Positions 34,805 to 62,850 of a stretch of DNA of 64,000 nucleotides are shown here, in pieces; positions within the stretch are counted from its first letter, which is position 1; every line of letters starts with the position of its first letter. The notes below the pieces were generated by a model, which saw only the letters and a program-made list of their open reading frames with translations, had not been told where the DNA came from and searched no databases. This DNA is from Chlorokybus atmophyticus. Its lineage: Eukaryota > Plantae > Mesostigma and Chlorokybus algae. The stretch lies in the NCBI GenBank assembly GCA_009103225.1, contig RHPI01003788.1:294421-358420 (forward strand), given 5' to 3'. The translations under genes were made by a program, and so were the position numbers.

Positions 34805-34836
34805 TGCATCTATCAAGTGTACCCCGATCCCCCCTC

Positions 34837-34941
34837 CCCCCCCCCCCCCCCCCCCCCCCCCCCCCCCCCCCCCCCCCCCCCCCCCCCCCCCCCCCCCCCC
34901 CCCCCCCCCCCCCCCCCCCCCCCCCCCCCCCCCCCCCCCCC
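34837..34941. repeat. Poly-C tract ending at a single N
   Basis: About 105 C's followed by an N at 34942. The length may be an assembly artefact. Confidence 0.8.
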
Positions 34942-36876
34942 NCCGTCTCTGCACTGTTGGGCAATGTCGGGGAATGCGCTTGACCCCTACCCTTAGGGGG
35001 TCGGAGATGTACATTCCCCCACCGTACCTGGGTGGGGATTGGTGGGGGCATTCAACACTTTACCCCGACCCTCTCCATGTTGAGGATGGCGGGGAATGTC
35101 AAAGGAATGTTAAGGGGATATTAATTGTCAGAGCCGCCTGTTGTGCACATTGCACAGCAGGCTGTTGCAAAACGTAGCCAGGTGCATATATCGCTAGATC
35201 TACATATATGTATATGTAAGCTATAGTGTATATATGCATATACGTATGCGTATATTCATATACGTATGCATATATGTATATATACAAATGTGTATACATT
35301 ATTATCAAAGTGAATAGATACATAGATAAGTAAATGAATAAATGAACATGTATATATGGTTATACTCTACGTATTACACATATGTGCATCAATTCAAAAG
35401 AACATGGTACGAGTAGCAAATTAGGGCGAGGAGACAAATATGAGAGGGCACAATAAGGGAGGGGCAAAAGAATGCGAGATGTACTACCTGACACTTATCG
35501 GTATTGGTGGAAGGTCAAGACGTACTTACCACCATAACATCATGACCATTGCGGGGCAACAGCAGCAGCATACCAATAGTTTGTAGATGGTTTTGGGGAC
35601 TTTATGACGAAGCCTTTGACTACATGATGTGGTACACTCAAGGCATCCGGTGCCGACGATTTGATCACTACGGTGTTGGACTGTTCAAGCTGTAATAGTT
35701 ATTCTGTGAGCACAATATGCAGTTTTTAGTTAGAGCCGCAATTAGAATCGTTGTGAGACCATGGCCTTTCTCATATCATGTGCGTGCGTGCGTGCGCGCG
35801 CGTCAGGTGCGTGGGTGTGTGCCTGGGGCCGAAGCTGATGGAGGGGCTGGTTGTCATCCTCTCCTTCCCGGATGCGATGCTATGACTGTCTGTAGGTATT
35901 GCACCATTTGCGGTAATGATGAAGGTAATGTCAACAGGTGGGACTTCCGTCTAGGAGGTGTAGTCAATCTTTATGCCTGTGCATATGTTTGTCAAGCCGA
36001 TCAACAAGTACGTTAGCGTGGAAAGTGTCGTGCAGATTGTCTTTGAGGGCAACCTATCCTTAAGTTGCAATTGTTAAGGCCTGCCTGGACAAGCGTTGGG
36101 TTGTCACGGACGTGCGATAGTTGAAGGCCAAAGGATGTCATTATTGTGTCAGACTCTTTCCTTACAGATTGTGTGATAAGATACTCGCAACAATGCATAT
36201 AGCTATATACATATTGTTGCAACGAGTTGACAAGCCTGTCGGGCATGCAGACGGCCGCCGCGGCGCCGGCGAGAGCCAAAGTTTTTAATGCGATGTTGAG
36301 GCCACGAGTTAAGAACCATGTTGACAAGTAGATAGACCTGATGAGGATCTTGTCATTGCGCCATTGTGACCGAAGCTACGCTGACTCAGTCCAGCTGTCC
36401 GTAGCTAGGCCGACAAACAAACTTTGTTTAAAGATATTGAAATCCTGCCTTAGGTTAAGAACGAGATTGTAATCATGCGAGTTGATGTCATTTAGTAGTT
36501 GGACTACCACGCAATGCGCCAACTAGATGATATGGGCATGGTCTAGGCCTGTTATAGCGATGAGCAAGGGCTACCTTCGTCACGTACAATGTGAGCTGGT
36601 ACTGCTAAACGAAACAAGACATGTACATGGTCTTCTTTGCAACGTTAATGCCGAGACTTCACGCAAGGTGTCTGCCAACGAAGACTGATTGTGCGCCGCC
36701 GTCAAGTGTAACGCAATGTGATGCACAGCCGTCGATCTGCATGTGCTTGCCGCGATTGTCCATTATGATGGCGCTAGCATTCTGAGGGGTGCGGTCCTTG
36801 AGACGATGTGGCATGACGTCAGCTGCTATAGTGAGTGGGGCAGCAGCTGCAATGGCGCTTCAGGAGGATAACCTAT

Positions 36877-60100: not shown

Positions 60101-61716
60101 CACGCAATGGTACAGCGCCTTGGTCTAACACTCGGTTCGCAACGCGCACGAGTCCATCACATCGGTGACAAGGAGCCTGATGCTTGGCCAAGGAATGAGC
60201 TGAAGAAGCTCGCATGTAGTCCTTCAAAGATGTGCCGGTTGCTATGGATACGTACACGCCGGGCCCAACACACTGTTGCTGTGCATCATCCAAGCGTCTG
60301 CCCTTCAACGCCCAGTACGACAACATGATGCCCTGCTGCATGCTGCCCCCACCTGGACACAACCATGTGGTGGATGCAGCTACTCCAAAAAATGCTCTTC
60401 CTCATGGTCAATGTCATCTTCACACTGATATTGCCCACTATGGCAAGCCTCGTGTTGTTGCTCATCTCCCAGTGCATCCTCAACCTGCTCCTCTTGCTGT
60501 GCGTCAACATGAGTCTCTATGTTGACATTCACTTCTTCCATAGCAGTGTCACTGAGTGATGATGTGTCTGACTGTGTGGTGTCTGCAACACCACTCCTCA
60601 CAGTGTGCTCAAGATCCCGCTCACAGCAATCGTCCTTGTCGGTGCAGCTGTCGCTGACTGGGGTGCGTTCACACGACTGCGCACGCTGAGCTTTGGCCTT
60701 GCGCTGGGCATTTGACCTGTGCTTGGTTTGCAGCATGGCAATCTGCAACTCAACTGCCTTGATTTCGCTGCTGTAGTCCAGAATCTTTGCTGTGTTTTCA
60801 TTGCTTTCTCGTGCTCACCTTGCTGAGACTGAGCTTCCACTGCATTGGCCGCCAGTTGCTTGGCCTTCTTGACCTCTTCAAGCTGCTCTTCCAAATGCAG
60901 CAGATGTGTTGCACAATGATCTGCTGTTGTGTATTGACGCTTCTTCCTCTGCACTGCATGCGCACCAGCTTCGCGTTGTTGAAGCACTACTTTTGAGCGT
61001 GAGCCACTGCGCTTCTTGAAGTCATATGTGCGACTAGCCAGCATGCGCACCAGTACCATCAATAACCCTCTGTGTGCTGCAAGGCCTGGGTACTTCATGC
61101 ATAGCAAGATGCCAGCAAAATTCATAGCTATCTCATAGTCCTTCAGGTTGTCTCGCTTGTACAACACTGCACCTTTAGCTGCTTTTACGTCATCTGATGA
61201 CATGACCTCCGGCAAGCTTTCAACAGCAGTCAACAGCTGCTCAGTCTCCTCGACAGTAAGGCTCGTGGGCTGCTTGGAGAGTTGGCGCACAACAAGCTTC
61301 ACAACATCACCACTCGGAGCAGCTGCAAAGTCTGTGCTGCCTTGATTGGACACTCTCTTGTACGTCATGAACGCAGTGAGACTGCTTTGCACACCCTGAG
61401 TTCGACGTGTTGCTGCCATGACGGATGATGACGTGACGGTAGGGGACACGGCATTGCGCATCATGCCAGCTGGCGTGGCCGCGTTGAACTTCATTTTCTG
61501 CAGCAGTCCCAACATGCGCTTCACATCGAACTCCTTCATCTTCAAGGCGTCATCATGTAAGATCTCTTGCAGCTCAGTGTCTTCAGCGTCTAACAGATCC
61601 TGCACCGACTTCACTCTCAGCTCCTGTAGCTGATGTTCGTACTCCATGCACGCGCATGACTCAAGGAAGTCAGCCATGGCAGGCAATGCGGCCATGGTTT
61701 CCTGCATGAAGGTCAA
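57137..61716 (-). pseudogene. Large transposase: SAM-like N-terminus, coiled/acidic linker, Zator/TP36-like DDE core, Cys-rich C-terminus
   Basis: Consecutive ORFs 60598-61716, 60380-60748, 59742-60362, 58716-59723, 57845-58939 and 57137-57841, joined by in-frame stops or frameshifts. Motifs GRDDAAGFRLD, ADGGSDEGPSH, REAGCSYKNRTE and CYYKPGCPHPEC...CEEC..CTGQY. Confidence 0.75.
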
Positions 61717-62850
61717 GCGAATGACTGAGAGTTGAGCGCTGTTCAGCGGTGACAGTGCTGCTTGCTAGCAAGCACATGCATGCAGAACACCAACACAAGT
61801 GGATGCTGCTGAGGATGACGGTGGTGACCATACTATAGATGGCAGGCATATGCATGCAGGACTTGAGATGACGACTGCTGTTGACGATACACATGTAAGC
61901 ACGCATATGCAAGTGCACACGCCCAAGAACAACAGCACAAACAACTTGATAACCATCTTGATCATTGTGGCAGACGATGAGATAAAAAGGCAAGTGGTGA
62001 AGCACATTCAGCTGTAGGTGTTGTTCACTTTAATCAATAATATTCCTACCAAGCCCATGCCCTCAATTGAAGTATTACTGCAACATTACCAATTGCTCAT
62101 CGTGTGGACGCAGCTGCAACAGCGTATGTTGCCTTGCAAACAATGTCTCTGACTGTTTACAATAACGTGCTAACTTGCACCTGTAATGGTGCAGCCGCAA
62201 TCTGAACTAGCAGCAGTCAGTGCAATGGACTTTAAGTAAATACTATACAGCACAAGAAAAGTAGTAGCAACGAGTATAGCTACATGCAAGTGGATATGGT
62301 TGTGGTTGCAGCAAGTAAAGTGAGCAACAACATGCATGTGACGCTGTACTGTTAGATCAACAAACATGCCACTGAGTGGCCTTAACTGCGTGCTCCAAGC
62401 AGAAGCGAACTTGCTGACAGTGAGTGAAGCAATGTGTTGCTTGACAAGCGTACCTCAAGACTCAACGCCTTGTGATGTCAATAGTCAGACCAGCTCCGCC
62501 CACGTCAGCTCCAATCCCACCGCCGCCGCCGCCGCCGCCGCCACTTCCTGCTCCTTCTTCTTCAGGCTGAGCTGGGTCACACGTGCTTTCCCGCCATTTT
62601 TGTGCCCGAGGGGGGTCGGCCGGTAATTGTAAAGGAGTTGGGCGGGGGATGTGCAAGTGCCCGACCCAATGCTGCAAGATGTATAGGGAATTGTAGTCAG
62701 CCCCACCCCTCATGTATCGGAGATGATGGGGCCTTACAAACAGGCCGTTTCCGACACTGTGGGGCATTGTGGGGCAGAATTCCGGCCCATGGGGCAATTC
62801 CCCACACTCGCCCCATGCGGGTGGGTATCGAGGTACACTTGATAGGTGCA

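Follow-up and report, generated by a model that had tools for sequence, protein, structure and literature searches.

A decayed DNA transposon, probably of the Zator superfamily, within a split copia long terminal repeat of Chlorokybus atmophyticus

Zator is among the least characterised superfamilies of eukaryotic DNA transposons, with no Pfam model and few described ends. It is related to the bacterial TP36/ISAzo13 elements, within the IS630-Tc1-mariner group to which the Tc1/mariner transposases also belong (PMC7386202), and 3-bp target site duplications (TSDs) are found in both Zator and ISAzo13 (PMC10045372). The amphioxus element Zator-1 has 33-bp terminal inverted repeats (TIRs) and TAA/TTA TSDs (PMC12905397). 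Zator has been published from Hydra and Rhizophagus; its proteins carry no Pfam domain, and among fungi it is abundant in Rhizophagus only (PMC5751038). The RNase H core of Zator-1_HM, from Hydra, is printed in the supplement of Majorek et al. 2014 (PMC3985635). Here we consider a 64,000-nucleotide stretch of the Chlorokybus atmophyticus assembly (contig RHPI01003788.1, positions 294,421 to 358,420; hereafter the window), in which some 28 kb of DNA splits a long terminal repeat (LTR) of a copia retroelement family, copia-A. We think it probable that the insert is an old, dead copy of a cut-and-paste DNA transposon of the Zator superfamily, later invaded by retroelements.

The insertion site and the element ends

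The split LTR serves as a built-in empty site, so that the insertion is cleanly delimited. Direct reading of the window and self-BLAST agree that the LTR is interrupted after 34804 and continues at 62851-62854, the insert being 34805-62850, or 28,046 bp. The left junction reads GGAGTA-TGA-TGCATCTATCAAGTGTACCCCGAT and the right ATCGAGGTACACTTGATAGGTGCA-TGA-CCAAGC. In the self-BLAST, 34653-34804 and 62852-63208 align to neighbouring stretches of the intact LTR 36877-37384, with breakpoints that meet at 37233/37234. Restored with one TGA, the split LTR measures 507 bp, the intact copies being 508 and 511 bp, and it is 94.5% and 92.6% identical to these two. TGA occurs twice around the insert and once in the intact LTRs (as CGA/TGA). 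The initial annotation had proposed from the two LTR halves that a transposon with 24-bp inverted ends and a 3-bp TGA duplication lay between them, and both the abutting halves and the ends, as read at 34802-34828 and 62827-62853, bear this out. Because the sequence past the split LTR (62852-64000) matches the gag side of the intact copia-A copy (41704-40565, 90.7%), the split LTR is the 5' LTR of a plus-strand copia-A that leaves the window. Taken by itself, the window copy would formally also allow a 4-bp TSD (ATGA), the element ends then being slightly ragged, with an offset of one base. The 3-bp reading puts the inverted repeats in perfect register, and it agrees with the relatives described below.

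All public sequencing runs were kept as contigs, the best of them holding 17% of the sampled words. In two runs, X2 and X3, contigs ending at 62850 run on into CTACGCGGAGT, where the LTR continues without interruption; such contigs come from other copies of copia-A and do not represent an empty allele at the locus. In the same two runs the copia-A LTR (62901-63100) has a summed contig depth about 50-fold above that of the transposon interior, and although such depth is not copy number, it suggests that the LTR family is highly repeated and the transposon low-copy.

The left and right ends are inverted-identical at 22/24 positions (the end sequence may also be expressed as TGCAYCTATCAAGTGTACC). 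A degenerate form of the 24-mer finds two sites within the window, the two element ends, where none is expected (100 shuffles), and by our own binomial estimate the chance of at least 22/24 at fixed breakpoints is about 1e-11. The ends are also marked by a subterminal motif, GGGG[A/C]AT, which occurs 10 times in the window; six of these sites lie no more than 300 bp from the two ends, at 34969, 35013, 35045 and 35091 on the left and at 62761 and 62797 on the right (binomial P about 1e-10). Comparable motifs, GGGGATTTGAC and GGGGGATTGAC, stand at the ends of a homologous element (L001, below), and motifs of this type are candidate transposase-binding sites.

Directly inside the left TIR is a run of C residues, followed by an N. 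Relatives have a C-rich tract, CCCCACTACCCCCC, in the matching position, which suggests that the run is an expanded native tract; it may instead reflect a sequencing problem. One might ask whether the insertion is real and its interior partly a construct of the assembly, in which contigs from different copies or loci were joined at the two Ns, 34942 and 55095. The first N comes directly after a 113-bp homopolymer, 138 bp into the element, the second lies exactly at an LTR edge, and no public run spans either of them. The sequence just past N34942, however, holds four of the ten motif sites, of the same type as at the other end, and so is argued to be the same element; the position of N55095 completes a 5-bp TSD (CTTTG/NTTTG), with the same satellite on both sides. 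A misjoin would, moreover, be unlikely to unite complementary LTR halves with a TSD, and we hold a composite interior to be very improbable.

The transposase, its relatives and their shared termini

Minus-strand open reading frames (ORFs) were examined from 61716 to 57137, just inside the right end, where a large transposase gene is found. An exhaustive HMMER search with the 364-aa ORF 58939-57848 gave 582 relatives at E up to 0.001, all on eukaryote-like contigs, the best being 44-47% identical. The homologues are large proteins of 900-1,500 aa in which both terminal regions, N and C, are Cys-rich, and some of them carry a PHD finger. In the numbering of ORF 58939-57848, the invariant or nearly invariant residues of the family alignment are R74-D75-D76; D183 and D187-E188, in VDGGxDEGP; and N224 and E227, in LNRVELQNG. 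Pfam and NCBIfam scans gave no meaningful matches, whether to the transposase ORFs, to ten long homologues or to 48 aligned cores. The ISAzo13 family, PF07592, gave no hidden Markov model (HMM) match at E up to 10 to the window protein or to 48 relatives, and a profile search against the sequences of solved structures found nothing.

An AlphaFold2 model of the catalytic domain, built from 48 sequences, is confident, with a predicted local distance difference test score (pLDDT) of 86 and a predicted template modelling score (pTM) of 0.86. Its order of elements, b1-b2-b3-a1-b4-a2-b5-a3, is that of an RNase H-like catalytic core, and the three acidic positions lie where strand 1 ends, immediately past strand 4, and in the helix that follows strand 5. 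With near-invariant D75/D76, D183/D187 and E227, and with fold matches that are transposases and integrases, the protein has the characters of a DDE transposase, the likely catalytic residues being D75/D76, D183 and E227. Among solved structures, Metnase, Mos1 and Sleeping Beauty match best through their catalytic domains (Z 10.7, 10.6 and 9.8), followed by IstA and retroviral integrases; Foldseek is concordant but weaker. In the ESM Atlas, clusters from Cnidaria and Rotifera are nearest (template modelling score, TM, 0.86-0.74), and the best named family is ISAzo13/PF07592 (TM 0.59 by query, 0.73 by target, over 231 aligned residues), with DUF7869 and then Tc1-like DDE_3 next in order. A separate structure comparison is concordant, with Mucoromycota and Rotifera clusters on top. 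TP36/ISAzo13 is thus the nearest named family by structure, while the sequences fail to match its model.

What ties this family to Zator in particular? Three motif blocks can be set beside the printed Zator-1_HM core: FLSQDDKARV in Zator-1_HM and NRDDAAGF in the window family; KTVDGGPDENPRY and RVDGGxDEGPxH; and FVATNAPGRSAF and TTRxSGxSYLNRVE. The VDGGxDExP motif is common to the window family and Zator-1_HM, and the two ISAzo13 sequences in the same printed alignment are without the DGGxDE form. When a 50-aa block of the printed Zator-1_HM core was aligned to the family profile with hhalign, it fell exactly on the second-Asp motif (E 2.9e-5).

The strongest line of evidence comes from the ends of related elements, for which the loci of several homologues were fetched. 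Two of these loci, L001 and L005, are on one contig (ENA ERZ21788760, ctg98926l), which carries two inverted element copies, 98% identical, whose similarity begins at the same base (L001:7114, L005:7098). The L001 element is 6,832 bp long (L001:7114-13945); its transposase, an intact homologue of 903 aa, shares about 41% identity with the window protein. The element starts TGCACCTATCAATGTAATGCCCCACTACCCCCCTTA, its opposite end is the inverse at 35/36 positions, and TTA flanks it on both sides; its terminus may be written TGCACCTATCAATGT[A/G]ATGCCCCACTACCCCCCTTA. At two further loci, L002 and L003, whose assemblies differ in base composition, the same 12-mer lies about 0.7 kb past the gene and adjoins TAA, with 0 and 1 mismatches. 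The relatives' elements end in the same 12 bases, TGCACCTATCAA, with 3-bp duplications and G-rich subterminal motifs; these bases are exactly those at the right end of the window element and are one base off its left end. Because the 12-base ends are shared, the termini belong to this transposase family. The initial annotation had named TIRs that are unpaired and unlinked to the transposase across the genome as a finding that would tell against it; at the fetched loci of relatives the same terminus flanks homologous genes, which meets that objection to the extent that these loci can. That relatives in unrelated organisms have the same end sequence is, in our view, the main notable point of the study.

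These termini also bear on whether the Zator-like gene is a mere passenger between the ends of another superfamily with 3-bp TSDs, such as CACTA/EnSpm or PIF/Harbinger, since a 3-bp TSD is not unique to Zator. The ends here begin TGCA rather than CACTA, no Transposase_21-type domain of the kind that goes with CACTA termini was found, and there is no second transposase outside the nested retroelements. With the same terminus flanking homologous genes at three other loci, a passenger gene is scarcely credible.

Several further observations were made on the relatives. The second copy on the L001/L005 contig, L005:7098-11179, is truncated; 98% identity between two copies, one of them intact, suggests recent activity in that organism. 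A pogo-like gene (HTH_psq plus DDE_1) lies at L005:3064-4719, a few kb from the Zator-like copies. Discovery of the TIRs worked only through the two-copy comparison in L001/L005, an inverted-repeat search alone giving AT-rich noise only at L002-L004. A metagenome scan with the 19-nt terminus gave three matches, on contigs of 2.5, 398 and 489 kb, in which similarity is limited to the terminal 19-20 nt; we take these to be chance. A C-terminal PHD finger, weak in precomputed matches, is present in three proteins at L002 and L003 (P0007, P0161 and P0164; E 7.5e-6 for P0007). In those members that carry it, the finger could serve to target chromatin; none was seen in the copy described here.

A closer question is whether the family belongs within Zator or is a sister to it, a eukaryotic lineage of its own, not yet described, that arose from insertion sequences of the ISAzo13/IS630 kind. 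The lack of any PF07592 match would fit a sister lineage, as would the large proteins with their Cys-rich terminal regions and occasional PHD fingers, and as would the presence of a distinct eukaryotic family, DUF7869, at a similar structural distance. Membership in Zator is favored by the sharing of DGGxDExP with Zator-1_HM and not with the two ISAzo13 sequences, by TSDs of the TWA type in agreement with Zator (PMC12905397), and by nearest clusters from Cnidaria, Rotifera and Mucoromycota, Zator having been published in Hydra and Rhizophagus. We judge a sister lineage improbable. Somewhat less doubtful, and still unlikely, is that the clade is a distinct, undescribed branch of the ISAzo13/Zator radiation whose DNA ends have stayed the same in animals, fungi and a green-lineage genome. 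It would be marked by the invariant terminus TGCACCTATCAA, by subterminal sites of the GGGGAT type and by transposases of 0.9-1.5 kaa whose ends are Cys-rich. If so, the kept ends could reflect an unusually strong co-constraint of transposase and DNA, or repeated horizontal transfer.

Several points weigh against our assignment of the window element to the Zator superfamily. The comparison with Zator-1_HM extends over 21 columns, with a probability of 74%. The family has no sequence-level match to PF07592 or to any Pfam model, though a Zator-group protein of Amphimedon does match PF07592, and the window clade is accordingly divergent. The TSD is TGA here and TTA or TAA in the relatives, and the evidence from the window genome comes from a single copy. 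The left end is anchored by 24 bp alone before the poly-C run and the N, with a second N at 55095, and the public runs contain just fragments of the element. Even so, several independent lines (nearness to ISAzo13/TP36 by fold, the Zator-1_HM motif and the termini shared by relatives) support the Zator/TP36-related lineage that the initial annotation had suggested, and the TIRs, 3-bp TSD and DDE transposase agree with its reading of a cut-and-paste element; the assignment is supported, and not proven at the level of full-length sequence.

Interior, decay and expression of the element

The interior of the insert is dominated by later arrivals (Table 1). Nested LTR retroelements, all on the minus strand, make up 15.9 kb: a copia-A and, separately, a copia-B into which a chromovirus has inserted. 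When 36877-41853 and 44151-55094 are removed, 12,125 bp remain, as against the roughly 12 kb estimated earlier. The content of this remainder was only partly as first described. It includes the large DDE transposase gene and satellite DNA; a gag/protease-like remnant was not found among the ORFs outside the nested retroelements, none of which has a Pfam domain. Nor does the label of a large, cargo-carrying element hold up: the 28 kb consist of a 12.1-kb element and three later LTR retroelements, and the rest of the element is satellite or non-coding and contains no captured gene that can be recognised. The segment thus owes its size to later nesting and not to cargo, and the locus is a warning against equating size with cargo. 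The chromovirus has a chromodomain and possibly a TSD, TGACT, with ends one or two bases off; judged by its LTR pair, it is the youngest insertion of the stack. The nearest protein clusters of the copia are from Streptophyta, which fits the green lineage, and so the algal-type genome of the initial annotation, only loosely.

Table 1. Features of the insert and its flanks, by window position (TRF, Tandem Repeats Finder; IN, integrase; RT, reverse transcriptase)
Feature	Position	Strand	Evidence or remarks
Host copia-A 5' LTR, left part	34653..34801	+	93% to intact LTR 37384-37233
TSD TGA, left copy	34802..34804		Single in intact LTRs, double here
Left TIR, TGCATCTATCAAGTGTACCCCGAT	34805..34828	+	22/24 with right end; first 12 nt are the homologous-element termini with 1 mismatch
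Poly-C run, 113 bp, then a single N	34829..34942		TRF; directly after left TIR
Left arm, non-coding, 2.1 kb	34943..36876		Short ORFs alone, no Pfam matches
Left subterminal GGGG[A/C]AT cluster, candidate transposase-binding sites	34959..35100		4/10 window sites
Nested full-length copia-A, later insertion	36877..41853	-	LTRs 36877-37383 / 41343-41853, 95.7% identical; TSD CCTAT; gag/IN/RT domains
163-bp satellite, 4 copies	42221..42864		TRF
121-bp satellite, left part	42921..44150		TRF; same family as 55200-56483 (self-BLAST)
Nested copia-B, holding the chromovirus	44151..55094	-	LTR pair 97.5%; TSD CTTTG/NTTTG; domains
Chromovirus (Ty3/gypsy) within copia-B	~45409-51454	-	LTR pair 99.1%
121-bp satellite, right part	55095..56483		Parted from 42921-44150 by copia-B; TRF and self-BLAST
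Transposase pseudogene	57137..61695	-	~980 conserved codons (60272-57323) and a 366-codon upstream ORF
In-frame TAG	57845..57847	-	Aligned to Q/K/S/T of homologues
Frameshift between KGF and LKANPD	58803..58819	-	Homologue alignments change frame
In-frame stop, conserved region	59742..59744	-	Homologue alignments continue through
GT-AG intron, 752 nt, 5' leader	61702..62453	-	Joined X1 contig, canonical ends
Right subterminal GGGG[A/C]AT motifs	62755..62805		Sites 62761, 62797
Right TIR, reverse complement TGCACCTATCAAGTGTACCTCGAT	62827..62850	-	22/24 with left end
TSD TGA, right copy	62851..62853		Read directly; intact-LTR comparison
Remaining host copia-A 5' LTR (to 63208) and interior, leaving the window	62854..64000	+	95% to 37234-36877; 90.7% to 41704-40565

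The transposase frame is broken by two in-frame stops and one frameshift; the gene is a pseudogene, and the copy is accordingly unable to move itself. Any later movement would, since the transposase has decayed, require transposase in trans, and given 16 kb of nested DNA such movement is unlikely. Upstream of the conserved codons is a 366-codon ORF (61695-60601, minus strand), which opens at a Kozak-like ATG just past the leader intron. No homologue or domain was detected for it, and a SAM domain is not supported (Pfam E 6.3). The ORF encodes either an N-terminal extension of the transposase that is specific to the lineage or a product of its own.

Pieces of run X1, which we guess to be RNA, are identical to the window, and in one joint among them 61702-62453 is missing, the minus-strand ends of the gap being GT-AG. 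On one side of this joint is a leader exon, some 350-400 bp in from the right end; on the other is an exon starting 6 nt before the ATG at 61695. The joint suggests continued transcription of the pseudogene out of the right subterminal region. Another X1 joint skips 57799-57927 (129 nt) and would take out the in-frame TAG; its GT..AG ends are present on the plus strand only, antisense to the transposase, and 3 nt of microhomology are seen. Antisense splicing, a deletion variant or an artefact could each account for this skip.

History of the locus and comparison with known systems

What sequence of events might account for the present structure? We suggest that an element of about 12 kb or less entered the U3 part of the copia-A 5' LTR, 150 bp from the LTR start. 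A DDE-catalysed strand transfer would have joined its ends to the target, and fill-in of a 3-bp staggered cut would have produced the TGA duplication. The transposase, encoded just inside the right end and transcribed inward from the right subterminal region, would recognise the terminus TGCACCTATCAA together with the clustered GGGG[A/C]AT subterminal motifs. Later insertions would have brought in copia-A, then copia-B and then the chromovirus into copia-B, an order that rests on LTR identity; the element must be older than the nested copia-A, in which the two LTRs differ by 4.3%. The transposase would also have gained its two stops and its frameshift.

The dead repeat copy has no evident effect on its host, and we see the element as a new, divergent member of a known superfamily, fairly ordinary and not surprising in kind. 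Together with its relatives it does provide aids to annotation, in the form of a conserved 12-nt terminus, a subterminal motif and a catalytic signature (NRDD ... VDGGxDEGP ... NRVE), and it illustrates how nested retroelements swell a 12-kb element to 28 kb.

How does the locus compare with the systems already described? The Tc1/mariner elements (Mos1, Metnase/SETMAR, Sleeping Beauty) supply the best solved-structure matches, with 173-187 residues aligned; identity is, however, 6-8%, and whereas Tc1/mariner elements have 2-bp TA TSDs, the TSD here is 3 bp and there are no DDE_1, DDE_3 or Transposase_1 matches in Pfam. ISAzo13 (TP36) is the best named structural neighbour, but there is no match to it at the level of sequence HMMs, and the gene here is a eukaryotic one with an intron, encoding a protein three to four times longer. 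The likeness to the Zator superfamily is closest: a cut-and-paste element bounded by TIRs, with a 3-bp TSD and a DDE transposase that has no Pfam model, is nearest to ISAzo13/TP36 and carries VDGGxDExP at the second catalytic Asp. From the described Zator elements this one differs in its TSD, which is TGA rather than TAA/TTA; in a much larger gene, some 1,500 codons long, whose upstream ORF lacks homologues; in its length of 12 kb, with internal satellites; and in a host that is apparently of the green lineage.

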